From: Takakia lepidozioides
Taxonomy: Eukaryota > Plantae > Bryophyta
NCBI GenBank assembly: GCA_030704615.1
Contig: CM060732.1
Location: 9,858,001 to 9,922,000, forward strand
Direction: 5' to 3'
Length of the DNA stretch: 64,000 nt
Position numbers and translations under genes: made by a program. Positions 8,836 through 46,748 of this stretch are shown here, piece after piece (position 1 is the stretch's first letter; each line of letters starts with the position of its first letter). A model generated the notes under the pieces. It did not search any database and was not told where the DNA came from. It worked only from the letters and a program-made list of their open reading frames with translations.

Positions 8836-11800
8836 GGGGGCGTGCTAGATTGTGAGCAGCTCACGTGAGCAGAAAAAACTGTGAGCATGATTTTGCTCAC
8901 AGTTTTCGCCCTATTGCCGCAGACCTGTACCTGTTGGAAGCCCTATTACCGTGGGCTTCAAGCATCGAAAAAAGAGCATTTTTTTAAAAGAGTGAGCCTG
9001 CGGGTTAGCAGCAACATTGTCGAGTGGTTGATTGATGTTTGAGTGTGTTTTGAAAAGGAGTTGGATGAAAGAAGTGGATGAACGATGGATGAATGTGCGA
9101 TGAGAAAAGATGGATGAGAAAGAGAGTGGATGAATGAAAACGACGAATTCAGACCGGGGACCATTAAATGAAGCCCGAAAACACATCTTCAAACATGCAA
9201 GGCAGGGAAACTAGTGCTTCATAAATGTCTGTCTTAAAACAAATGATTCATTCCAAAAAGGCACTTCCACTGCTATCTGATTTTGAGCCCAAAACTGATG
9301 TAGAACTGTCTATAAAGATACTAGCCCGGCTCTGCACAAAACCACCTCTGTCGCGGACCACAGGAGGGGGAGATGAGAGGAGACGAATGTGCCAGATTGA
9401 GGTGGCGTTGACGCCACCTTGACGCCACCTTAATGCCGAGCCTGTTTCCCTCTACAAACATGGCTACTCGCCAAGGCTTTTATTTAGTTTTTATTGTTTT
9501 TATTGTTTTTGGGGTGAATTGTCATGGTCTTCTGGGCTGGAATTAAGCTCTAACAGGGGATGAGAATTAAGGTGTCATTGACAACACCTTAATCTGGCAC
9601 ATTCGGGGGGGGGGAACCAAAAAAAAACAGATTTTTATTTTTATTTTTTATTTTTTGTTTTTGTGACGTTAATTCACCTTAAGTGGCGTCAACGTCACCT
9701 GTCATGTTGAATTGTCACACAACAAATGGCACGTAGGCACTAGCGGGCGAACTAATATGTGTAGCAATGCATGTTATAGTCGATAGACATTCCAATAGTC
9801 GGCAATCTTGTTCTTTAGACAAGTGGTCGGCGCCGACTATTGCCCTCTGGAAGGTGCCATCAGACATGGTAGTCATAGTCGGCAACGACTATAGGGTGCA
9901 CGTTATAGTTGGCATACATTCCAGTAGTCGGCAGTCTTCTTCATTAGTCAAATGGTCGGCGCCGACTACAGGGCTCAGACAAGGTAGTCATAGTCGGCAA
10001 TGACTATAGGGTGGGGCTGGGGTAGCCATGCGGTATAGTCGACAACGACTTCCGGAAAGGGCCCCGGTCGGAGCCAGGTTGACCCACAGTTGGGAGTTGT
10101 AGTCGCCACCGACTATGACACAGACTTTGGCCTATTGGGTGTCATAGTCGCTGCCGACTATTCCATCTGGGAAGGGAGTACGGCCCGGACATTTGATAGT
10201 TTTCTCCATGTCATTGCAATCAAGGCAATTGTCCGTCCTCACGTCGAGTTTTGGTGCAGTGGAATAGGTACATAAACTTTTCCTTGCTTGCCAACAAACA
10301 TATCAGGTATATGCCAGCCAGTGTCACACAGTGGGCTAGCCTCCGTTCAGACTGCACAATATAGAACGGGAGGCAGTTAGGCGAGTACGTGAAAGTCACG
10401 CATCTGCCCTGCTACAGGTGGCTGGACTTGCCACCCGATGTCATTCCTGACAAAGAAGTGGATTTGTACAAGAAGTACACGAAGAACGAGCTACCCGCAC
10501 CCACACACATGGAGCCATTGATAGAGGAAGGTGTCGAGGAGGCTGCAGTCATTGTTGCCGCACACCTTGAGCAAGCCAATACAGCTCTGCAAGAAGCGGT
10601 GGGCAAGAAGAAACCCAGGAAAATGAAACAGAAACAGAAGAAGACAGCCACCACAGGACAGGAAACCCCCCCCCCCCCACCGGCACAAGGCCTGCAGGCA
10701 ACACAGGTGTGGAGGGTGTGGATGAGACAGATGGTGCTCACACGAATGACAACCCATTGGCATTTACTAAAGCCCTACAGAACTTCCAGTTTGAGCGAAG
10801 GAATCGATCTACTCAAAACCCATGGGCAAACACAAGTGACGGGAGGGGCATGCAGCTGGCAACCGTCCTGCTTTACGAGGCGCTCTCTTTGCGAGAAGGG
10901 GTACCAAACACAGACGTAGCTTGCCTCAAGTGCGATTGATTCCAGCTTGTCATCCGCAGGTTGGCATCCAAAGGAACAACGAGTACGTGGCCAGAGCCGA
11001 GAGGAGAAATCAACGCGTTTCTGGAGAGGCACCGCTCCCCCGAGCCTTTCCACTCTATGCGTAGGGGTGGCACGGTCTCTAAAGCGGGGGAAGACCTTGT
11101 TATGGTGGATCTCCCTGATGGACAGTCTATGAGAGGATATGGCAGAGAAGACATTGTACCGGCTTGGAATGCAAATACAAAGGATTCGGTCCCGCATGCA
11201 CTTGCACTGGCATCATCCTTGCTTAAGGACGATGGCTGCCTTGTGATTTTCTGCAAGGGCGATGCAAAGATAGAGGTTGAAATTCAAAGATGTGTGGGCC
11301 CAGCGGGGCCCTTCAAAGTTATCAAGAGAAAGTGGACTTGCCTCAATCAGCTACCACTTCAATATGGAGAAGCAGGGCAGCCACAAGTAAGTTCAAACTT
11401 CTTAAACTACTTAAATTGATTGCTCCCCACCTTGAATTATTCCTCACCGCCCACTGTACCTTCCTTGACATTTTCTTGAAAATGCATCTAATAGTCGTCA
11501 AATATCCTTGTAGTCGGTATGGATTGTCTACAGAGATATAGTCGGTGCCGACTATGTTTCGGGGTTGCCTACTGTCGTTTCATAGTCGGAACAGACTATG
11601 TCTCAGTGGGGCCCACCTTTCGATTCATAGTCGGCACCGACTATGAGGAGGGTATGTCATGTTGGTTAGTCATTGTAGGCCGGGATTGTGGGATTGATAG
11701 TCAGTGCCAACTATACCAAAGGTGGGGGGTTTGACAGTTGTAGTCGGTAACGATTATTACAACGCATTTTAGAAGTGGGGAGCTGGAAAGTGCATTGTGT

Positions 11801-20062: not shown

Positions 20063-21183
20063 GTGTCTTCTACTTGGCATTGTGAGACCATTCATCCTGA
20101 AACTCCTCAAGCATTTGCATATTTCAAACTTAGAAAGATCAATGTTTGGTGAAGAGATTTAAACAGTGGTTGCACCACTTCTTGTGGATGTTGAATATTC
20201 ATTTGTCATTTGGTTGTGGATGATGATAGTATCTGCCAGTATTCTCAAGCATTAGATTCTGAACTTTAATCTTGGATTCTTGGCTGAAAGTTTTGTTGGT
20301 GCAGGCCAATACTTTGAGAGATTCGGAGTGTGCAGCAACACGCATTAAATCCACCATCCATGGATCTTGAACTATTTACCCCCTGACCCTTCTTCCTCTT
20401 GATCCAATTTTAATCCAAAAGAGGGTAACAAGCCCTGAGGACTTGAGGCCGTTAAGTGGTAAGCTTTAGTAAGCTTTGCATTCTGTCAACTAGTTGTCCT
20501 CTCTATCATCCGGATGGGCTCTTCAAGAGCATATAGCAAGTCATTGTTACTGCAAGGAAAATAAAATTTTCCTCATTTCAGTCTTTTTGGTTACAAGTTA
20601 CAACCAATACTGATGGATCCTGTTGGTCAGCAGTGGTGCTCAAGTGGAGAAATCTAGATCCCAGCTACTACTATGCATACCCCTATGAGTTACCCTGTAC
20701 TCTCTTCGATTGTGTGGCAACCATTGGCCTGTTGAGTGGACTTGTCATTGAATATTAAGAATGCTAGAAATCCTTCTATCTAAGCTTCTGAGGTTGGACT
20801 CTCTAAAGCTGCACCCAAAGCTTTCTCCATTAAGAGCCCTGCCTTCCTGTCTCTCTCTTTTCCGAGGTTCATGACACTATCTTGGGATGGATGGATCTTG
20901 GGGTGGGTCTTTGCAACCCTGATTGCAGTAGTGGCCCCGTCCTCCTGCCCTCTTATTGTACCATCTTTGCATGCGCCCAGTGTGGGTGCTACAGAAGCCT
21001 AACGCCCCATTACAGTGCAGCATGAAGAGCTGATAAGGCCCTGATCACACTGGTCTAAATTAATTTAGGTGAGTGCACCGCCGGCATTTAAGGAGCCTGT
21101 GGAATCTGAATCTGCAAACTGAGCTCTCAACACCCAGTGTCTAGCTAACTGCAGTAAGTATGGCAAGAGTTCTGTGTGCATAC

Positions 21184-21688
21184 CAGTGTTGGTCTGGTAT
21201 ATAGGTGAAGGACTGGTATAAAATATTGGTATATGCAGGGTATTAGATACCAGACCAGTCTGGTATCATTTGGGAGAATACTGGGTCATATACCAGACCA
21301 GGCTGGTATCAGTTTTTTCATACCAGCCTCAATACCAGTACTTCCCCGCCGTCTTCCTCATTTACTCTGGTATGTATACTATATTAATTTATGTGTATAT
21401 ATGCCTACATACTTGTACTTATGTATATTTATTTCTTTGTTTATATTGTATTTTTTTTCACTTGATACTTGCTAGTGATAAACTTGTAATTCAAGATGGC
21501 TTTGGAATGATACCAGAATTGATATCTCGTACCAGCTGATATTGTGGTCATGATACTCATACTCATACCAGTATGTAGAGAATTATACATCCACCATTAT
21601 ATAGACCAGACTGGTATAAATTTTTTGTGATACGTCTGGTACCAGGACCAGTCTGGTATGTCCTAACACTGATACCAGAACAACACTG
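21184..21688. mobile_element. Non-autonomous hAT MITE, 505 bp
   Basis: TIR CAGTGTTG...CAACACTG, 8-bp TSD GTGCATAC (21176-21183 and 21689-21696), internal ATACCAG/CTGGTAT repeats. Confidence 0.9.
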
Positions 21689-21944
21689 GTGCATACCAGT
21701 GTTGGGCGGTTACCCGCCTGGGCCCCGGGTAACCGCCGGTTCCGGTTTCGGTTATGTGGAACCGGACCGGAACCGGACCCGCCTGTGCAGAACCGGAACC
21801 GGAAATTGGGGATTGTGTGGGAACCGGAACCGGCGGTTCCAGCTACGACCACATGTGTGGGAACCGGGTTTGGGGTATAGGGTTCCGGTTCCGGTTCCGG
21901 TTCCACCCGTGGGCTGTAGCCCTAAGTGTCTCTAGTCTCTACGT

Positions 21945-24455
21945 GCGCGGTTCATGATGCGGCGATGCGGAAGGTAATCGGCCACGCCGTAGTGCTGCAA
22001 TATGTGGTTGTCCCAGAAGGCCACATCATTGGCTTGCCATCTCCATCTCACTGTGAATTCGGGCTTTGTAGCATGCGCAAACAGAAATCCCAGCAATGCA
22101 TCGCTCTCGTCCTTTTGCAGATCCCCAATGCGGGTCAGGAATCCTTGGCTCAGGAAGAGAGCCTTGCGCCCACTGTCAGGATGAGTGCGGATGAGAGGGT
22201 GCACCACTGGCGGGTGCTCTTTCACAGCTTCCTCCCACAGCGCCTTGGGGTCCCCTCGACCTTCGTAGTGGTACCGGGGCTGCGAGAATGACTTGACGAA
22301 GCTATGCTCTGCTTTTAGCCCAAGAAGAAATTGTTGCAATGGCTTTGAGAGCGCCTCGAAGGCTGCAATGCCGATTGCATCGCAGGAAGGTGATCTCTTG
22401 TTCGCTTCGTAGTGCTGCAACACTCTGTCAAGCACAGTTTTGTGGAAGTCCGTTGTCTTCTAATCTGTCTGCTTCTTTATGCCGTCTTCATGGGCTCCCT
22501 TTGTGCCCTCTCCTTTACTGGTCTGCCTCTCGTTCTCTCTTCTGTTTGTCTTCTTCTCTTTTACCTTTGCGCGGATCTGCTGGGGAACGAGCTGGGAACA
22601 GCTCGATGTATAACTCATTAGAGTTATGTTGTCAAACTCATGGCAACTGCCTTCTTGAATTGTGACGCTGATCGCGCGCCCTGAAGCCAAACATGAACTA
22701 CCAATGTGGCTCAGAGATAGCAATTTCCGCCTTTGCCCCTACGATTGTAATATCTTGGGTGAGACGAGTGCTTTGGAGTTTTAGAATGCCCTCTCCTTCC
22801 AGCTTATTTTGTTACTCAGTATAGTTATATGCAGAAGTGAAAGACATTGCAATTACATTTTTGAATTCCTACGTTGATCAAGCGCCCTGAAGCGCCCTGA
22901 AGTTCGATACAGCCAATTCCCCTCGTGTCCCTACGATTGTAGCATCTTCGGCGAGCTTTGTATTTCCAGGTAGTTCTGTAATATATTTGTATGCAGCCAA
23001 GAAGTAATACACTTTGCAAATACCTTCTCAAATTTTTACCGTTTGATCAAGTGCCTGAAGCCAAACATGAACTGCACATAGTGGCTCAGATATAGTGAAG
23101 TCTCCCTCTGTCCGATTGGAACAACTTGGGTGTGACAGGAAATGTGCCTCCTTGTTCCGAGCTCTGGATTTTCCTGTGCCCTCTCCTTTCTAGATATATG
23201 TTTTCTTCTCTTTCTCTTCTGTGATCTATTGTGTATTCCAAGATAGCCAATATTTCATAGAGGTCTTCCATTACGAGGATCAGAAATGCTTGGCAGCATA
23301 TCTACAAAAGTCCTTGACTCTTAGACAATCCCTTGATTATCAGTTGTTTTTCAGCTGCTTGTTGAGGGCCCCACTCCCTTTCTTGTTTCATTCTTTCTCT
23401 AGGCCCTTCAGTTCTTTGGGATTTCAATAGAAAGTATCATTTCATTTCTCTTTCTTTCAAATATATCTCGCCTCAGGAAGCTTTTACATCTTTGTCAATC
23501 AGTCTTTCAGCAGCCTTGGCTTCTATTTGGGGGATTCTACAAAGAAGCAGCTGGCATCTGTAAATCTTAAGTTGGCCTTCCTTGTCTATTGTATGAGCTC
23601 TTTACCTGCACATGATTGTGTATACGTGAGAGCTAGAAAGAAAATGAGCAGGTGAAAGGGATGATGCATGCTCGTCCCCATCCTTATAACTGGTAGCGTT
23701 TAAGCTTGTAGTGATGTGTGGCAAGCATGTGTTGTTTCTTGCACAGAGAACCTGTCTTTCTCACCTCCTATGTAGTTTCCTGGATGGCCTAGACCACAAT
23801 GTCAACCTCTTAATTAGTGGAATTCTGGTGCTTATCAGGGCAAGAAATTCTCACATCAGTATGCTCAGATCTGAAACAGTTGCAAAGATGGTATGGCTGC
23901 AGAGATCGGGATAGGGTCGACAACAGCACCTAAGAGGAGGCTCTGTCTGCAAGTTTGAACAGAACCCAGGACTGGAGTTGAATGTGCAAAGTGTCACAGG
24001 TGAAATGGGAATTGCCGGGGATCACTGAAATTGCTCTTTAAGTTCATCCATCTGCACTTCAAGAACGAGGGAAACAGGGTATCACCACCCACGGGAGGTA
24101 TGAGCTTGCCGCTCAGGATTGTGCCCAAGGGCAGTGTCTCAATGAAAGTGACGTCGGTGTGCCACTTATCATTGTCTGGGGGGTGATCACCGTCAGAATC
24201 CAGTACCATGATTTCCTCTAACTCGGGGCCTAAGTTTGGGTAGATTGGATGTATGTGCAAATCACCGAAACGCTTGGCGAAGGCGTGCTGTTGGTGTGGA
24301 GTGATCGGCTGGTTGCGGAAGAAGAGCACCTGATACTGAAGTAAGGCGTCGTTGATGGCTGCCTGCTCTGCATCCTGCAACGGTTCCGCCAGAGAAATGC
24401 CTTCGACCACGGCGCCGATGGCCCTCGTGAGTGGAGTGATTTGCAGAGTACTCAT
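21945..24455 (-). pseudogene. tauD: Bacterial-type taurine/alpha-ketoglutarate dioxygenase TauD, split by a ~1.7-kb insert (parts 24074-24455 and ~21945-22380)
   Basis: Colinear with E. coli TauD as recalled: RFGDLHIHPIYP, PPDNDKWHTDVTF (HxD), GGDTL / GIAAFEALS, HPLIRTHPDSGRKALF, KPEFTVRWRWQANDVAFWDNHILQHY..DYLPHRRIM. The C-terminal few residues are lost. Confidence 0.9.
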
Positions 24456-25336
24456 GGATCCAGTAAACTTGTTGTTACTGAAGCTCTGACAGTAAGGTGT
24501 AAGCCTTCAAGGCTGTAGTGTCCAACTGCTCTTGGGCACCTGCATCATAACACCAAAAGATCAATGCGCTTACCCATGTGCTGTTCAGAACGAGGGCCCT
24601 AGGAGTAATTTGCTTATCTAGAGCGAGCAGCAAGACAAGTCTATTGACTCAGACAGCGCAAGTGCAGAATGGCCCACATCGAGTCACCTGGACAATATAT
24701 TGGAGCAGCGAAGAAATAGACCAACAACTGCTGCTGCTCCCCGAAGATCAAATCGGTTGTACAGTGAGATAGATTCTGCAGGTTTGCACCTCGCGCTGTA
24801 GTTGGTCAACAAATTTGCCACTTTGAAAATTGTGGGGCTAAAATCTCTCCAAGGGAAGGTCAACGCGTACACCATACTTCTACCTCAATTGCAGCGCCAT
24901 CATCAGCATTTTCCATAGCGGAAATCAAAACTTGCTCTCTTGGTACCACTCGAACATCATTCTCGTATAGCTGAATATCAAACATGCAATTAGACCCTGG
25001 CAGTCCCACGACCATCGACTGAGACTATTCGCTTCTGTGCTAGCTACATAATCTAGATGAATTCAGACCAACTGAGAAGAATTAACCCAGAAAGAGGTCA
25101 GCTCTCTGCCCCTCTCTTGTACGGTGCTTAGTTGTACAATCTGGATGACAGCCAGGCTAGCTTTGGATGACCAATTTGTACTTTTGCAACACATAATGGA
25201 TAGCAAGTTGGTTGGGGCGTAATGACAGTAGGTTGCTTCCTTGCCTCAGTGTCTATTGCCATGATCAATGTTGTTCATCGTGCAACAGAGATTTATACAG
25301 AACCTCGGCGCCTGACTGTTCCTGTATATGTGGCAG

Positions 25337-26172
25337 GTGCACACATACTTTCGGGAAATGTGTTTGAACCACGGGCACTCAGTGAGCTCCTTCTAGATTG
25401 GAAGGATCAAGGCGTATGTCCTCAGTCCATACTTATGAAAACTGGATGATGCAAGAGAGGTAGATGGCTTGGGGAGTGACTGTCTTCCGTTCATGATGTT
25501 ATTCAGCTGGAAATGGAGTGATTGCTGATGAGTGCTAATCAATTGAGACACATCCGTTCATGATAATTTGATAATAGCAGATTATCGGTGATGAGGATTG
25601 GTTGAAGGATATCAATTGGATCTTTTGACACAGGCTCCACTGCGTGTGCCAGTTGTGGAAGACAAGTTTTGGATGTTATTTGAGAAACGTGCACTGCCAC
25701 TCCCATCTCCCTTCAACAACAATAGTAACTTTGTTATTAGGTCAGCTTCTACTCTCCTACTCCGGCTTGAGTGCAATATTTTTGTTTTCTCCACATATTC
25801 AACTTTGTGGAAATTATGCTGCTACTTTCCTATGTAGAACAGGTATTGAAGTGTACAGAGAGACGGGGAAGAGACAGTTGCATGCATGAAACTAGCATAC
25901 TAAAGTCTTCCACCATGATTCAGTGGGCCACCAAATCCCAGGAAGCTTGGTAAATCCTAAACCCTCGATTGGAACAAACACTTGTGCTTAACCACAGAGA
26001 CAAAGGCAAGGGGTATTATTCTATGTGAGAGCCAGCTATTTGGCAATGCTTGTTGAAGCCTTCCATAACCATGTGCTATGCTTTGAATAGCTTGAGTGAG
26101 CTGGTGCGGTGGCTAGGAGGGAAAGCAGAGAAACTTGGGGTTGAAATTCACCTAGGTTTTGCAGCGAGTGAG
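25337..26172 (+). pseudogene. ETFQO: Captured ETF-ubiquinone oxidoreductase exons (25337-25413, 25634-25740, 26091-26172)
   Basis: GAHILSGNVFEPRALSELL, APLRVPVVEDKFW..LPSPF.N..NFVIS and LSELVRWLGGKAEKLGVEIHLGFAASE, each bounded by AG/GT. Confidence 0.85.
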
Positions 26173-27241
26173 GTAACCCCCTTTTCTTTTGTTCACCATT
26201 CTGTGGGTTATTGTATTGGCAGAATTGATTTGCACCAAATTAGAGGGGTCTCCGCACTGTTCATTTCCAAGAAGTTCTATTGTGGGATGGTAGGATAGCT
26301 GCAGGTGGAGCTGAATAAGGTGCTTATGCAGGTTTTGTACAAAGGTGTTCCTCTTTTCGCTGTATGTCAGGGAATCTTGAACAATGTTGACTGGCGAGAG
26401 GAGGTATGTGAGCAGCCATCCCCCCGTCTCTTCCATCCTCTCCTTCAGGGGCTCTCTCGTTCATAGTTTCTGGCTACTCCACGTGGCACTGCATTCTGGC
26501 TGTCTTCACTTGAAAGTCAACCTGGTCTTGGTTGTCAGTGATTTAGTCATCCAGTCGTCTCCAAGTGCTGTTCAGCTACTGAAGAGGGTTTTTCAAAAGA
26601 GAATGATCTAAGCAATCGAGTGGATATCAATGCTGTAGCAAGTAGAGTTAGTGACGTTGGTAAGCATCCACCACTTTTGGTTATTTTACTGTTTTTAGCT
26701 TTAGTTCACCATGAAGCTAATCAGCTTCCTCCTTTTCTGCTATGGCATGTGGTGCAAGAGGTAAGGAGGACGAGTAAGGAGGGCCCACCTGCAACCAGGC
26801 CCCTTGGTCCATGGTAATCATTGATCATCATTTTTTATTTTTTTTCCTGTTTTCTTTGATGATATACCAAGGGGCTGATAGCCCTTGCTCCACTATGGTA
26901 GATTTTACATTGGAGGGAGCACAAGCAAAAAGGGGCCCGCCAACCAGCCCACATTGATCATCACTGGTAAGAATCTTCCCTTTCTTTAAATTTTTTTAAT
27001 TCTTGATACAATTGGGGGTTGATGAGATAGCCCCTTTGGCTTCTGTTATAGCAGATTCTGCATGAGAGGGAGGGAGCCCAAAGTAGGGAGGGACCTGCCA
27101 ACCAGCCACCATTACCCGCTTGTAACTCCATTTCATTGAGCTTTATTTTTTTAGTTGTTTACATTTTTAGTTGTAAATATATGAGTTGTGCACAATTATT
27201 AAATGCCTTTTGGATTCTTTGTTTGCATTGTTTTTACACAG

Positions 27242-29612
27242 GAGTTGTTCCACAAGCTTTTTATGTCATGGAGCCCAATATTTTCGATGAACTAGAAAGG
27301 GAAGTTGTTCCTGACATCAATGTTGATAATGAGAGAGCTTTGGTGGAGTGCCATGTTGCGGAGGATGCTCATCATGAAGCCTCATTTACATCAGCTCATC
27401 AAGCCTCGGCTGCAATGTCATCTTCCACAGTTTCGCCATCACACACGGTGTTGGATGTGGAGGCGCAGCTCCCAGTACTTGACAAACAACGGGATTTTTG
27501 GAAGCCCCACAATCGCACTGCTTCGACATGGGCATTCTATGCAACAAAAGACTCTGCTCCAGTGGACATAATAAATCCACAACAAATGAGGTGTGTTCTA
27601 TGTCATCCTGTTGGTGTCACTCCTGCAAGCAAGAAGGGCATTGTGACCTATAATAAAACCAATGGTATCTCTGCACTTCGAAAGCATGTGGATCAAGAAC
27701 ATGACATTGTTTTGCGTAGGTGGATTGAGAGGGAAAATGAAGGACCTGAGAAGGCCCGTAGGCCAGCCAAAAAGAGGCCCGGCCCCACTCCTGGAAACAT
27801 AGCTTTTTTTTTTACGAGCTCCACTCCATACAACCAAAATGATGATCAACAGAAGCAGTTCAATGAGGATTTAGTCTTATTCATTGCAAAGGAGTTGGTT
27901 CCACTGTCTTTGGTAGAATCCCCTTGGCTAAGAAGGATGGTGTTGAGGCAAAATCCTCGGATTGTTTTCCCTTCTCGACGGACATTTGTGAATGAGGCCA
28001 TTCCAATCTTGGCAGAGAAGACGAAAGAGCGCTACATGTCCCCATCTCTTCAGAGTTGTGCTACTTGCTCCGTGAGTTTTGATTTGTGGATGTCAAGAGG
28101 GGGAACTGACACTTTTGTCATCATAGCGCACTTTATTAATGAACAGTGGGAGCAATGTCATGTGACTCTTGGCATGTTTGAGACACCTGACACATCTGGG
28201 GCTGCCATGGCACATCAAGTCAACAATCTTCTTGTGAAGTATGGCCTCAATACTCGCATTATTGCTTACGTCAAAGATGAGGGAGGTAACTTGGCCACTT
28301 TGACCAATGCTTTGAATTCGGTGGTCTCATGTGCGTGTTTGGGGTTGGATTCTCCATTTGTGGGTAGCTGTTTTGGGCATGCAATGTCCAAGTGTTGCCA
28401 GTATGCAACAAATGATGCAAAAGTATGCGCAGATATGAGATCGGTTTCTATAAAAAATGCCCAATCAGAGTTGCAAAAAACCATTACTTGGACAAAAAAA
28501 AGTGACAAAGGGAGACAAGAATGGGCAAAGGCATGTGTGGACAGCGGCATTCATCCCCGCAAACTGAAGACTCCGGTGAAGACACGGTTTGCTTCCAATG
28601 TGATCCTCTTCCAAGAGACTTTGGAGTTTAGGCAAGCCATAATCACTTGTTACTCTAAGCAAACCTCATTGGCACTACAGTCTCGCATACCAAGTCCACA
28701 AGTGTGGGCCATTGCCCAATCAATTTCTACAGTTCTAGGGCCTGTGGTTCATGAGTGCATTATGAATCAATCTGGGGGATTTTGGTTGTTGTCCGATGCT
28801 CTTAATGCAGCCATTGCAACAACAATTCGCATGCGAGGAAGTAGTGTTGGGGGGGCTGCAAGTGTGGATCATTGTATGGGGGATTTCTCAACAGAGTTGA
28901 CATTGTTGGAATGGCGGATGGCTCGAGAGGTGGTATATGTCTTGGAACCATTTCTTTCTTTTTTGGAAGGGTTTCAATCGCGCAAAGCTCACAATATGCT
29001 TGCGCTTATGCTTGACCCACGTTACAAGGGGTTGTCATTGGTATCACAATATGTGGGCAAAGAGCGTGCTTTGCATATTGTGTCCCAATATGATAGTATG
29101 GTGTTAGAGCATCTTTTGGTAAAGTGTTTCAAGGTCTTACATACGGATACTCCGAATCACAGCCCACTTCCACAATGGACGAGATGTCCTTATTTGGTGT
29201 GCATGACCACAATGAAGACATGACATTCACAGTGGTGAGAGAACAACTATCACATTTCAGAAGGACGAAGATAAATGAGGGTGAGTGCGTGGCTCCTTTG
29301 AAATGGTGGAAAGAACACGAGTCTCTCTTTCCGTATGTGGGATTTTTGGCACGGCTAATTTTGGGCATAGTTGGATCTCAGATTGAAGCTGAGAGGGTTT
29401 TTAGTATTGCAGGTGTCATAACAAACTTGAGACGGTGCAGGTTAAATATTGAAAACCTTGATATGCTTGTGAGTGTAGTCAAGAATTGGCCAAATGATGC
29501 TAGAGTTGGTTGCTTTAGTACTTCCATGAAAGAGTTTTTGGATAGGGAAGAAGTCCTCTTAGATGAGAATGAGGACTTGATTGCAGAGGCAAACCTCTTT
29601 GAAGTAGACTGA
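27242..29612 (+). CDS. hAT transposase (BED finger, DDE core, dimerisation domain), one frameshift near 29150
   Basis: WAFY..RCVLCH..ALRKHVDQEH (BED), SFDLWMS, KDEGGN, CFGH, VKTRF, LDPRYK and LKWWK..FPY..LARLILGIVGSQIEAERVFS. Confidence 0.92.
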
Positions 29613-30513
29613 TTTGGCTTAGAGACAAATTATTGTTCAACATATTACACTATATTCTTTTGATTGGAGTTTGTTTATTTATCATTTTTATTGAAAATTT
29701 CAGTGACATCCCGTGTACTCAGTTTGTTGTATGCTATATTGACAAAGCATCATCCAAAAAACACAAATTTATGTAGTTTTTTTTAGTTGTGCTTTTGCTG
29801 CACCATAAAAGGTAACCATAAAATTACACATGTTTAATTTGTTTTGTATTTTGAATTAAGATCCTTATGTAGTTAGTTTGTTTTAGTTGTTCTTTGCTAC
29901 ACCGTACGACAACTTATAAAATCTCTGGTTTTCCGTTTTTAATGGAGACCATGCGTATATAACTAGTTATATATACCATAAAAGACAATCACAAAAAACA
30001 TATAAGTTTATTTACTTCTGTTTTACTAATAAATTCCCTGGTTTTAGTTGAAAATTCTCAGTATGACCAATCAGATCAGTTCATCTAATTTTCCAGAAGA
30101 ATAAAAAATTAAAAGAATTTAATATATTTTTAAAAAAGAACCGGAACCTAACCGGAACCGGTGTTTTTTTTCCAGCAACTAACCGGTAACCGGAACCGCC
30201 CCCATGTTAAAAAGTCAGAACCTGAACCGGACCGGAACCGCCTTAATAAAAAATAACCGGATCCGGATCCGGAACCGTCTCTTCAAAAATTTGTGGAACC
30301 GGAACCGAAGGTTCCTTCACAAAGGCAAGAACTGCCCAACACTGGTGCATACCCTCACCTTCTTGTCTCCCTGCAGCCTGTGACCAGAAGGCAAGGGCAG
30401 CGGACGGACAGAAACAGTGTTATCATCCGGTCGGGCCCCACTGACAAGCTTCGGAGGTGCCAGAGCCTCGAAGGCGCCTCAGCGAGGCAAGCAAGCAGGC
30501 AGCGGGGCAGGCG

Positions 30514-32118
30514 ATGGCGCCCAAGGCAACCCGCCCGTCTCCGCGCTCTCCAGGGACCCCACTGCCATCGCTGTCGACGTTGCAGGGAGCCCAGGGATCG
30601 TCGACAGGCACTGGTGGGGCGTTGAGACGGGCGCATGGAGGCCGTCGCACTCCGAGCAACAACAATCATCTGTCGAACGGTACTGGTGTTGCGGGGCACA
30701 GCAATGTGCATGGATATGGAGGATTTGGCAACGGGGATGCTGCGAGCGCAGGGAACGGGAGGAGGCAGCACATGGCGGGGGCTCCCGCCCCCGATGGCTC
30801 CTTCTCCAACCCTAGTGCATATGGCGGGGCCACTGTGCCGTCTCTCTACTCGCCGATCCACCAAGGAGCGGCCATGGTACCCGTGTTCTTCCAGCATCCC
30901 ATGCATACAATGCAACAGGCGATGCTTGCATGCTCTGATGGGGGCCGGGGACTCACTCACGGCCTCGTTTGCCCGGGAAACCAGCCGTTGATGCAGCCTG
31001 CCTTTACTCCAGCTGGCGATTATCGGTTTGGAGCTCCCGGGCTTGTACTCCCCCCTGCAATTGAGTCGGATTCTCCCTTAACTAATGAGACCAATAGTGA
31101 CTCAGCGGCTCGAGACGGCACTGCAGCAGCGGGTTCGAAATCCAAGGAGGTAGCTGTGGCAGGTCCCGGTGCAGAAAACGAGCATCAGAATCTTTGGAAT
31201 GAGGAAATGGTGAGGTTTTTGTTTGAGACTTATGATATCGTTAATCATAAGCTATGGCTTGTTTTTAAGGACAAGGTCAAGAATCAGAAGAAATGGGAGA
31301 CAATTCTGAACATGATGCGCGAGAAGTTTGGGCGAGTTTTCACCAAGAAACAGTGTGAATGCAAGTATGGGAGTGTGAAGCGAGATTGTATGCGATATTT
31401 CAACCTCTTCAACAGGGCTGGGCAAACTGTGCCTCCAACCGATCCTGCCAATGGCAGGGAGCTCATACAGCCGAGATGCTATGAAATCTGGATGGAATTT
31501 TGTGGCAAGACCGCAGCGGCCACAGCAAATTCTGAGGACGAGGGCTCATCGGCTTCAGGTTCTTCACACGGTCGAGCATTTGCCAATGTTGAAGAAATGA
31601 GCGAGGGAGAAGACGAAGATTACGAGGATGGGCAGGGACCTCGTCAGTGGGGTATGGCTGAAGAGCTGCCAGGTCCTCCGAGGGGTGTGCCCCGTAGCCC
31701 CTCCCACAGACTGCATCAGAGAGAGAGACACATGGACTCCTTCCAGCGGCCACCACCTTCAGAGTTGATGCTAGCGGGGGACGAACTCTTCATGGATCCT
31801 CAGCGCAAGGGGAAAAGAAAGAACAACACAGAGCTTGTGAAGGATCTGAAGCAACTCGTGGCCAGGTTAATAGAATCTTCCGAACGAAGAGAGCAAATGG
31901 CTCACAGGCGATCCCGCAATATGTTAGAGCAGTTGAGAAGTCAGCACATGGCGTGGATGGATCGGCGGGCCACTGAAATGTTAGAGCTTAATAAGTTTCA
32001 AGTAGAAATGCTGCAGAATCATGATCACAAATTTGAGAATCTTATGGGGGGACTGTCGGTTCTAACGCACAGCATCACTTTATTGGCTGATAGGCTGAAA
32101 CCTGTACTGGAAAGGTAG
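30514..32118 (+). CDS. Myb/SANT-like (trihelix-type) DNA-binding protein with C-terminal coiled coil, 534 aa
   Basis: WNEEMVRFLF...KKWETILNMMREKFGRVFTKKQCECKYGSVKR. Uninterrupted ORF; first ATG at 30514; upstream acceptor at 30376. Confidence 0.75.
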   Translation: MAPKATRPSPRSPGTPLPSLSTLQGAQGSSTGTGGALRRAHGGRRTPSNNNHLSNGTGVAGHSNVHGYGGFGNGDAASAGNGRRQHMAGAPAPDGSFSNPSAYGGATVPSLYSPIHQGAAMVPVFFQHPMHTMQQAMLACSDGGRGLTHGLVCPGNQPLMQPAFTPAGDYRFGAPGLVLPPAIESDSPLTNETNSDSAARDGTAAAGSKSKEVAVAGPGAENEHQNLWNEEMVRFLFETYDIVNHKLWLVFKDKVKNQKKWETILNMMREKFGRVFTKKQCECKYGSVKRDCMRYFNLFNRAGQTVPPTDPANGRELIQPRCYEIWMEFCGKTAAATANSEDEGSSASGSSHGRAFANVEEMSEGEDEDYEDGQGPRQWGMAEELPGPPRGVPRSPSHRLHQRERHMDSFQRPPPSELMLAGDELFMDPQRKGKRKNNTELVKDLKQLVARLIESSERREQMAHRRSRNMLEQLRSQHMAWMDRRATEMLELNKFQVEMLQNHDHKFENLMGGLSVLTHSITLLADRLKPVLER

Positions 32119-43772: not shown

Positions 43773-46748
43773 TTGAAGGACTTGGGAGCACTGAAGGGTC
43801 AAGAGATCCGTATTGAGTTGGCCACTGACACGCCAATCTTTCGGAGACCCTATAGATACAGTGACATGGAGAGGTCTTTGATTCAGATGAGGACTCAAGA
43901 TCTCTGGGAGGCAGGTTTGGTGGAGCTCTCTGGTGGAGAGTATGCTTCAGCCACAGTGATGCCAGCCAAGAAGGATGTCTATGGCAATTGGACGGAGAGA
44001 CGTATGTGCGGTGATTACCGGCCTGTAAATCGTCAGACCAAGTCCGATAAGTATGCCATGCCAACACCAGAGGAGATCTTTGATGCCATCGGGCATGCTA
44101 AGGCCTTTAGCACTTTGGATTTACGATCCGGATATCATCAGTTGCCAATCAAGGAGGCGGACAAGCAGAAGACGGCATTCTGGGGGATCAATGAGCACGG
44201 CAAGGATTGCCTATATCAGTGGCGGTTCTTACCATTTGGGCTTAAGAATGCTCCTGCAGAGTTTCAGAGAGTCATGGATAGGATTCTAGCAGGGGTGGAC
44301 TTTGCTCGGTGCTACATAGATGACATCATCATCTTTAGTGTTACGATGGAGGAGCATGAGAGACACCTTCAGGTGGTATTGGAGCGCTTGAGAGCGCACG
44401 GATTGAAGTTGCATCCGGGGAAGTGCAAGTTTTTCCACAACCAGATTGAGTATCTGGGTCACATGATATATCCTGGAGGATTGGGGGTACAGCAGACTAA
44501 GGTAGAGGCCATTGCACAAATTCCACGCCCCACGGATGTGAGCCGAGTTCGAGCTTTCATGGGGTTGGCAAACTATTATAGACGGTTTGTCAAGGGATTT
44601 AGTACCATTGCAAAGGCTCTAACCAAGCTGACCAAGGTGGACCAGGAGTGGCAGTGGGAAGATGAGCAGGAACGAGCTTTTCAAGAGCTCAAGGCGAGGT
44701 TGACCTCGGCGCCTATCTTGAGACGACCTATCAGGGGACGTCCCTTTCAGCTGCATACGGATTGGAGCATGCTGGGGCTTGGAGCGGTGCTCACACAGGT
44801 GGATGATGAGGGAAGAGAGTTCGTAGTGGCTTGCGCTAGCCGCTCGAACAACGCTGCAGAGGCTAAGTACAGCTCATATGAGGGAGAGTGCTTAGCTGCA
44901 GTGTGGGCCGTGGCACACTTCAGGTGCTATCTATACGGCAATCTTTTCACCCTTGTCACGGATCACCAGCCACTCAAGTGGTTGATGGAGTCAGACAAGC
45001 TTACGGGGAAGCTTGCACGGTGGGCACTTATACTCCAGGAGTATGACTTTCAGGTTGTGCATCGACCGGGTTTGGTCAATCGGGATGCGGATGGATTGAG
45101 TCGCAATCCATGCATGAGCCAGCAGGATGACACTGGAGCTCGGTGGCATTGTGAGACGGACGAGGAGATGGTGCCGGGATGGCACGCATCTCCATTTTTG
45201 TGTATCTTGGCATCGGGAGGTCAGATTGGACCTACAACAGGGATGACTGTAGACGGAGTGTCTGAGGACCCTGAGGCTAGTGATGAGCTAGGTGGTGCCA
45301 GAGATATACATGAGGATTTGGCTGTGTTGGACTACCTCCGCACGGGAGACACGGCAGCCATTGTGACTGCCAGGGAGAGGGATCGGATCCTGCAACGAGC
45401 CAAGAGGTTCAAGTGGGAGGGGATACACCTACTTCGAGTGTGGGAGGATGGTCGGGTGAGGATTGTGCCTCACCCCACACAGCGTGCACGGTTAGTGCGG
45501 CATGCCCATGAGGAGTTGGGGCATTTTGGAGTGCGACGCACTCATAGTTTACTGCAGGGGCAGTATTGGTGGCGTGGTATGCATACAGAGGTGCAACAGT
45601 TTGTGGCTAGGTGCATGGTGTGTGACAAGGTGCGTGCTTCATTCAACGCCCCTACACCATAGTTGCATCCTTTACCTATCATGGGATTGGGCTACAGGTG
45701 GAGTCTTGACTTCGCAGGACCGTTGCCACTGACTATGCGCCACCACAGATATGTGTTGGTGATGGTGGAGCACTTCTCCAAGTGGATTGAGTTGGTTCCA
45801 TTGCCTGACAAGGCTTGTGAGGGGGCTGCGTATGCATTCTTGGATCGTGTGCTTAGCCAATTTGGTGCTCCAGCTGAGGTACTCACGGACCAAGGGAGAC
45901 AGTTCTTGGGGGAGTTTCAGGCTTTGTGTGATAAAGCCTTAATAGACCACCGCACCACTTCTCGGGATCATCCTGAGGCCGATGGCTTAGCAGAGAGAGT
46001 TGTTTAGACGGTGAAGAGGGGTTTGCACAAGTATGGCTTGCAGAAGGGACACCTAGGAGATTGGGATCTTCAGGTTCCTTGGTTAGCCATGGGCTACAGG
46101 TTCAGCAAACAAGCATCACTTGCCTCCTTCTCACCATATTTCCTTCTCTTTGGCCGAGAGCCGGATTTGCCTGCAGCCATTCGTAGGGACACTACTCAAG
46201 TCCTTAATCTTGACGATCCGGACGTGTGGGTACGTGCATGTGATCAGCGTGCAGAGTTGTTCAAGAAAGTCATGCCCATGGCTTTTGAGAACCTTGCCAT
46301 TGCACAGCACCGTGATACATTGAGGTATGCCACTATACGTGGTGGAGGATATCATCCTGGGGTTCGGAGGTTTAGCCCTGGTGACTATGTTTATTTGCAG
46401 CAGACTGCTCCTACGACTCTGGATGTTACTGCAGGGCGTGTTATTCTGAGGGTTCGAGAGGTGTTGCCCTCAGGGGTCCTGATCTTAGAGGGTCGGGATG
46501 GCATGACTTGGAAAGACCATGTGCGTAATTGTGCGCCATGTCACCTTCCCAATGTCGATGGCAGAGTTGACCCAAACTTGGCAGTGGTACCTGCAGGTTT
46601 GAGGTGCATGCTCTGTGGGTCTGCCAAAGGGGCAGCCACCATGCTGGTGTGTGATCGGTGCTCAAGGGGTTGGCATATGGGATGCTTGACACCACCTCTT
46701 GAGAAGGTTCCTGACGGAGATTGGTTGTGTCCACACTGCTTGGGATAG
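43773..46748 (+). pseudogene. Gypsy RT, RNase H, integrase and C-terminal PHD finger
   Basis: [61 protein letters not shown]...CDRC...HMGC...WLCPHC at ~46605-46740. Confidence 0.92.

Follow-up and report, generated by a model that had tools for sequence, protein, structure and literature searches.

Pack-TYPE transposable elements, Pack-hAT among them, are known from maize and rice and are non-autonomous by definition; the packFinder pipeline classes anything with a transposase match as autonomous (Gisby & Catoni 2022, PMC8903248). A complete hAT element carrying a transduplicated histone H3 gene has been described in the fungus Pseudocercospora fijiensis and other Dothideomycetes, where the captured gene was amplified and the original gene persists (Dhillon et al. 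2019, PMC6710886). Here we analyze a hAT element that carries both a transposase gene and an interrupted copy of a gene for the taurine dioxygenase TauD. The element occupies positions 21697-30344 (8,648 bp, with both ends fixed to a single base) of a 64,000-nucleotide stretch of Takakia lepidozioides DNA (assembly GCA_030704615.1, contig CM060732.1, positions 9,858,001 to 9,922,000). This whole stretch is designated the “window”, and coordinates given without a contig name refer to it. The case is one of gene capture by a transposon, not of a bacterial gene freshly arriving on one.

Like Pack-TYPE elements (PMC8903248), the window element is a transposon of the hAT superfamily with terminal inverted repeats (TIRs) and host coding DNA inside, and its cargo combines fragments, some of them truncated, that stem from at least two genes and differ in orientation. 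It differs from them in having a full-length transposase with one frameshift, nearly a whole coding sequence as cargo, and a non-seed plant as host. The label “Pack-hAT”, given to the element in an earlier reading of the window (the original prediction), is apt for the host coding DNA between the TIRs but not for the transposase gene that has been kept, since Pack-TYPE elements are non-autonomous. As in the fungal element (PMC6710886), a captured host gene lies beside the element's own transposase and captured copies have been inactivated. The fungal copies, however, number in the hundreds and owe their inactivation to repeat-induced point mutation, whereas the host here is a plant and inactivation came from an insertion and a truncation.

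The individual parts of the element also have close counterparts. All residues of Escherichia coli TauD (1GQW, 1OS7; NF007104) that contact Fe, 2-oxoglutarate or taurine are present in the window copy, which differs in being interrupted, truncated at the C-terminus and altered by plant-specific substitutions (for example, GGDTLW is changed to GGDTLF). The moss Ceratodon purpureus and the lycophyte Diphasiastrum complanatum have TauD genes of the same clade (83% and 71% identity, respectively), but these are intact, stand alone and lie outside transposons. A hAT element of the same family is present in Diphasiastrum, but is only 4.2 kb long and free of cargo.

Origin of the TauD Gene

Both halves of the window TauD were searched and placed in trees as separate rows, and the joined protein was never used. 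The closest proteins are the products of two Ceratodon genes (80-83% identity) and two Diphasiastrum genes (71%), followed by a few Logan/JGI contigs. Bacterial TauD proteins from Burkholderiales, Chitinimonas and Pseudomonas (60-66%) come after the plant matches. The Ceratodon genes (KC19_6G140200/M758_6G134800 and KC19_6G140400/M758_6G135000) are present in both sequenced strains, and the Diphasiastrum genes are O6H91_11G000700 and O6H91_11G001000. Ceratodon and Diphasiastrum are the only named plants among the best 120 matches; TauD is probably carried by more plant lineages than these two. At the DNA level the window copy is 81-83% identical to the Ceratodon genes. The two loci have no repeats in common, and the GC content is 37% in Ceratodon versus ~46% here; on these grounds Ceratodon was rejected as the host genome. 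Databases annotate the plant genes only as hypothetical or TauD/TfdA-like. No report on plant TauD of this type or on its horizontal transfer was found, and no assay of any member of the plant clade was found in the literature searched.

In a maximum-likelihood tree, the plant sequences form a clade with an ultrafast bootstrap value of 100 and a Shimodaira-Hasegawa-like approximate likelihood ratio test (SH-aLRT) value of 99. This clade is nested in a 45-row group of TauD from beta- and gammaproteobacteria (100/100 versus the outgroups), within which the tree gives no resolved sister group for it. A quick tree with wider sampling gave the same placement. The plant clade is split between a Diphasiastrum side and a side that holds the window copy, Ceratodon and the other contigs (100/96), and its members have common substitutions (P87E, W135F and A269G) at positions that are near-invariant in bacteria. 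Judged from these sequences, the ultimate origin of the gene is proteobacterial, and the transfer is old because the clade is common to a moss and a lycophyte. The split between lycophyte and bryophyte sequences is what would be expected had the gene been transferred once, into early land plants, and then been inherited vertically with losses. The original prediction had itself named nesting in a vertically inherited plant clade as the outcome that would count against it; the protein does nest in a plant clade, and the split within that clade is one that vertical descent would give. Further intact and intronless TauD genes of the plant clade (280-287 amino acids) were seen on metagenome and Logan contigs L005 (794-1639), L003 (972-1814), L004 (75-917) and L012 (1673-2536).

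The TauD genes of both Ceratodon strains and of Diphasiastrum are chromosomal, intronless, 280 codons long and situated between ordinary plant genes. The 10 kb around them are free of hAT ends, of motif arrays and of transposase sequence. TauD is thus truly integrated in plant chromosomes, as seen in the Ceratodon assemblies and in Diphasiastrum and, in the window, from its position inside a eukaryotic transposon. Given the shared clade, synonymous divergence (dS) of at least 0.9 and relatives' loci without hAT sequence, nothing suggests that this genome acquired the gene recently or by way of a transposon.

Cargo and Related Elements

A complete hAT element was located in Diphasiastrum at L008:8199-12380 (4,182 bp), flanked by a perfect 8-bp target-site duplication (TSD), GTCGAAAC. 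It has AACCGG motifs, the TIR tip of the window element and a transposase 62% identical to that of the window, and lacks TauD. A further element of the family extends from L007:8422 onward, and the two Diphasiastrum elements lie on chromosomes 11 (L008) and 6 (L007); the 13-nt tip, CAGTGTTGGGCGG, is common to both and to the window element. The distance from a conserved point in the transposase to the left end is 1.5 kb in the L008 element versus 5.9 kb in the window element, which therefore contains ~4.4 kb of extra DNA. TauD was found in none of the related hAT elements of Diphasiastrum and Ceratodon, and the stretch of cargo that separates TauD from the transposase gene had no match in any relative locus compared.

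The cargo also includes three pieces of a gene for ETF-ubiquinone oxidoreductase (ETFQO), a second captured host gene that does not figure in the original prediction. Each matches only the pig enzyme (2GMH), and together they align in order with its residues 76-103, 103-144 and 143-171 (E 9e-4 to 3e-3 each). The pieces are exon-like and would correspond to 5′ exons of a host gene separated by introns. The presence of intron-bearing host exons in the cargo indicates capture at the DNA level from a plant genome. An arrangement with TauD and ETFQO as neighbors in the relatives was considered and rejected, since the cargo stretch is unmatched in their loci. Taken together, the moss-lycophyte clade, the hAT-free TauD loci, the TauD-free hAT elements and the host ETFQO exons indicate that a resident plant gene was captured. 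The same four observations, with the plant-only clade supported at 100/99, speak against a horizontally acquired gene having been brought in or spread by the hAT; the original prediction had been of such a gene being mobilized by a DNA transposon.

Structure of the Element

The hAT superfamily is characterized by TIRs that start with YARNG and by target sites of the form nTnnnnAn. The window element has a TIR that starts with CAGTG and an 8-bp TSD, GTGCATAC, that is perfect on both sides; each agrees with the respective consensus. With 14 of 15 TIR positions paired, the near-perfect TIRs and exact TSD of the original prediction were confirmed. Clusters of subterminal repeats are present at both ends (Table 1). 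The window contains 25 AACCGG/CCGGTT hexamers, 20 of them within ~200 bp of the two element ends and 5 in the rest of the sequence, the 55 kb outside the element; the subterminal copies are presumed to be transposase binding sites. The 64 kb contain only three occurrences of the 9-mer CAGTGTTGG or its complement, all of them at transposon ends.

The transposase was mapped by tblastn using two full-length homologues (P0122 and P0125, 763-764 amino acids). Homology extends over 27466-29603 with zero stop codons, in one frame from 27466 to 29169 and in another from 29121 to 29603. The homologues stay in a single frame at the point where the window copy shifts, and this copy therefore has a single frameshift. 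The gene had been described as near-intact, and this holds in that homology is full-length and interrupted by a single frameshift. The C-terminal piece matches Pfam Dimer_Tnp_hAT (PF05699; E 2.9e-12). The nearest transposases are those of Diphasiastrum (56-62% identity; ~70% at the DNA level) and Ceratodon (47-49%), and the matched hAT transposases are 530-764 amino acids long. The frameshift in the transposase means that the element is no longer alive as an autonomous transposon; its TIRs are intact, and it could still be moved in trans.

Table 1. Features of the hAT element and its target site (window coordinates).
Feature	Position	Strand	Remarks
Left TSD, GTGCATAC	21689-21696		Identical 8-mer at 30345-30352
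Left TIR, CAGTGTTGGGCGGTT	21697-21711	+	14/15 complementary to 30330-30344
Left subterminal array, AACCGG/CCGGTT	21736-21903		12 motifs in 21736-21897; Tandem Repeats Finder (TRF) rows
TauD, C-terminal half	21932-22378	-	148 codons plus stop; Pfam TauD 133-266, E 4e-34; NF007104 210.1 bits
Insertion splitting TauD	22380-24071		1,692 bp, unclassified; three degenerate ~190-bp internal repeats
TauD, N-terminal half	24072-24455	-	128 codons from ATG; Pfam TauD 1-132, E 3.5e-26; NF007104 176.9 bits
Captured ETFQO fragment	25333-26178	+	Pieces 25333-25416, 25634-25747 and 26092-26178; two intron-like gaps
hAT transposase gene	27268-29612	+	Start codon at 27268 inferred; one frameshift near 29165
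Right subterminal array, AACCGG	30139-30313		8 motifs in 30139-30297; TRF rows
Right TIR, AACTGCCCAACACTG	30330-30344	-	15 bp; pairs with left TIR at 14/15
Right TSD, GTGCATAC	30345-30352		Perfect 8-bp direct repeat

State of the TauD Copy

In alignments with E. coli TauD (1GQW), the N-terminal half corresponds to residues 4-128 (E 1e-40) and the C-terminal half to residues 131-271 (E 5e-56). The two halves cover positions 3-131 and 130-271 of NF007104, the equivalog of NCBIfam for taurine dioxygenase. Added together, their scores of 176.9 and 210.1 bits exceed the cut-off of 313; note that this comparison uses a rough sum of the scores of the two pieces. By family, the sequence scores as a true taurine dioxygenase and not as a clavaminate-synthase-like protein. 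The NF007104 and Pfam TauD matches thus bear out the description of it as bacterial-type and only distantly like those plant proteins. The Fe ligands (H99, D101 and H255, in the E. coli numbering), the 2-oxoglutarate ligands (T126 and R266) and the taurine-contact residues (H70, Y73, N95, S158, F159, F206 and R270) are all retained. H70, Y73, N95, H99, D101 and T126 are in the N-terminal half, and H255, R266 and R270 are in the C-terminal half. This includes the HxD motif, distal His and 2-oxoglutarate-binding Arg that had been predicted to be preserved (H99, D101, H255 and R266 in the 1GQW alignment).

Aligned with the Ceratodon gene, which has no intron, the two halves meet at one nucleotide (nt 10381), so the 1,692 bp were inserted after codon 128. 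No GT-AG pair was found at the true homology borders of the insertion, and open reading frames (ORFs) inside it gave no Pfam matches. A canonical intron was rejected for lack of GT-AG at these borders, and a Helitron for lack of TC...CTRR ends with A/T flanks. At the other end of the gene, TauD homology stops at 21944, where the Ceratodon protein has been matched to amino acid 272 of 280 (tblastn), and RRD-stop takes the place of the final 8 native codons. This point is 41 bp from the last subterminal motif and looks like a capture breakpoint. The N-terminus is 1 residue longer than that of Ceratodon, such that an untruncated copy would have 281 codons. There is consequently no complete, uninterrupted TauD reading frame in the window, and the copy is disrupted, as originally predicted, both by the insertion and by loss of the last 8 codons.

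Apart from these lesions, the sequence is well preserved. The conserved motif WDNRVTQH reads WDNHILQH (three residues changed). In comparison with Ceratodon, the ratio of nonsynonymous to synonymous divergence (dN/dS) is 0.10 and dS is 0.90; dS is at least 0.9 versus every relative. Among bacterially conserved columns, 13 of 104 are altered in the window copy versus 10-13 of 108 in intact plant genes. A markedly degraded sequence was rejected on this basis, as changed columns are no more frequent than in the intact genes. Due to its low dN/dS and few changed conserved columns, the captured TauD looks like a plant gene that was functional until recently. With a 1.7-kb split and a truncated C-terminus, this copy is now a pseudogene, dead as an enzyme gene and probably without a physiological role.

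Neighboring Features

A 505-bp miniature inverted-repeat transposable element (MITE; 21184-21688) directly adjoins the left side of the 8,648-bp hAT. Its TIRs are CAGTGTTGGTCTGGTAT and CAGTGTTGTTCTGGTAT, its subterminal repeats are CTGGTAT/ATACCAG, and the first 8-9 TIR bases are common to both elements. GTGCATAC is found at 21176, 21689 and 30345, so that the tandem pair of MITE and hAT has a copy of the same 8-bp target before, between and after its members. This arrangement arose either by precise insertion of one element into the target duplication of the other or by movement of the pair as a composite.

On the right side, an open frame of 553 codons (30457-32118, + strand) begins 113 bp beyond the TSD. 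Its central part resembles Myb/SANT-like (trihelix) domains, by eye only. The ORF (30514-32115) has no Pfam match and no record in the assemblies searched, and no relative of it was found beside the Diphasiastrum or Ceratodon hAT elements. Farther away, a Gypsy reverse transcriptase-RNaseH-integrase ORF (43773-45662, + strand) is closest to elements of the liverworts Calypogeia (75%), Marchantia (77%) and Riccia (75%). The Marchantia protein Mp_2g26090 and two JGI proteins among its matches also have a C5 DNA methylase domain.

Discussion

We consider it likely that a hAT of the autonomous type, now recently dead, acquired its cargo by transduplication of DNA resident in the host. Building on the observed anatomy of the element, its family membership, the phylogeny of TauD and the comparison with relatives, a capture mechanism and a source locus can be inferred as follows. 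The TauD family entered land plants long before, from a beta- or gammaproteobacterium, and persists as an ordinary gene in a moss and a lycophyte. The hAT would then have taken up a ~4.4-kb piece of the host genome, lodged between the transposase gene and the left subterminal region and comprising a near-complete intronless copy of the host's own TauD and, on the opposite strand, 5′ exons and introns of ETFQO. Capture probably took place when an excision double-strand break was repaired, through template switching or synthesis of filler DNA, as has been proposed for Pack-TYPE elements. The captured TauD is now split by 1.7 kb and cut at its C-terminus, and the transposase is frameshifted. Of the claim that a horizontally acquired gene had been mobilized by a transposon, the proteobacterial ultimate origin is upheld by the trees; that the gene was brought in or spread by the hAT is not.

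Two observations weigh against this account. Diphasiastrum and Ceratodon are the nearest named plants for the transposase as well as for TauD, which could hint at a shared history; and the transposable element affinity of the window (the Gypsy ORF) lies on the liverwort side, while its TauD is closest to a moss gene. One version of a shared history, in which TauD of bacterial derivation travelled on this hAT family from one distant lineage of non-seed plants to another (this host, the moss and the lycophyte), is in our estimate very unlikely. If true, such plant-to-plant ferrying would explain both the small number of TauD-bearing plants and the nearest transposases being in those same plants, and a metabolic gene of ultimately bacterial origin would have been carried between plants by a DNA transposon. 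This hAT family could also have been the vehicle by which TauD entered plants or spread between distant plant lineages, with the stand-alone genes of the moss and the lycophyte being leftovers from which the transposon has eroded. The patchy occurrence of TauD among named plants (only two genera in the best 120 matches), the nearest transposases in the same two taxa and the TIR tip that is identical in the window and the lycophyte are all consistent with this, but against it stand the related Diphasiastrum and Ceratodon elements that lack TauD and the absence of hAT remnants within 10 kb of the TauD loci of those species. Moreover, TauD is nearest to a moss and the transposase to a lycophyte, which suggests different histories; neither the ~70% DNA identity of the transposase to Diphasiastrum nor the TauD dS of at least 0.9 is that of a recent event; and intron-bearing host ETFQO exons are part of the cargo as well. 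We therefore regard the hAT as a very unlikely vehicle.

The state of the TauD copy bears on another alternative, that it is still expressed as a working enzyme from which the 1.7-kb interruption is spliced as an intron. Both halves are stop-free and barely degraded, every catalytic residue is retained, and GT..AG pairs that keep the reading frame can be found with a displacement of a few codons (for example, donor 24075 with acceptor 22394, net +12 nt). A stretch of 1.7 kb would, however, contain such pairs by chance, the donors in question are weak, and the true borders of homology lack GT-AG. All relatives are intronless, eight C-terminal residues have been lost, and the change from WDNRVTQH to WDNHILQH likewise argues against a working enzyme, making splicing highly improbable. 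Bacterial contamination, or an assembly chimera of a bacterial gene with plant repeats, might be suspected of a gene that is without an intron and 60-66% identical to TauD of Chitinimonas, Burkholderiales and Pseudomonas. Yet its closest relatives are chromosomal genes of plants (83% and 71%) and not of bacteria, 1.7 kb of DNA that is not bacterial splits it in two, and it lies within a TSD-flanked eukaryotic transposon beside intron-bearing ETFQO exons, with a GC content uniform with its surroundings. An artefact of this kind can be practically dismissed.

Capture of resident DNA thus remains the preferred explanation. To our knowledge, there are hardly any descriptions of DNA transposons capturing genes in non-seed plants. 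The window provides a clean and fully delimited example from such a plant, in which a transposase-bearing hAT holds almost a whole host gene and part of another. As a by-product, the analysis provides evidence for a taurine dioxygenase family of proteobacterial type that has at least three resident hosts: a moss, a lycophyte and the plant studied here. Provided that the intact genes are active, sulfonates may serve some early-diverging land plants as a source of scavenged sulfur, as they do for soil bacteria.

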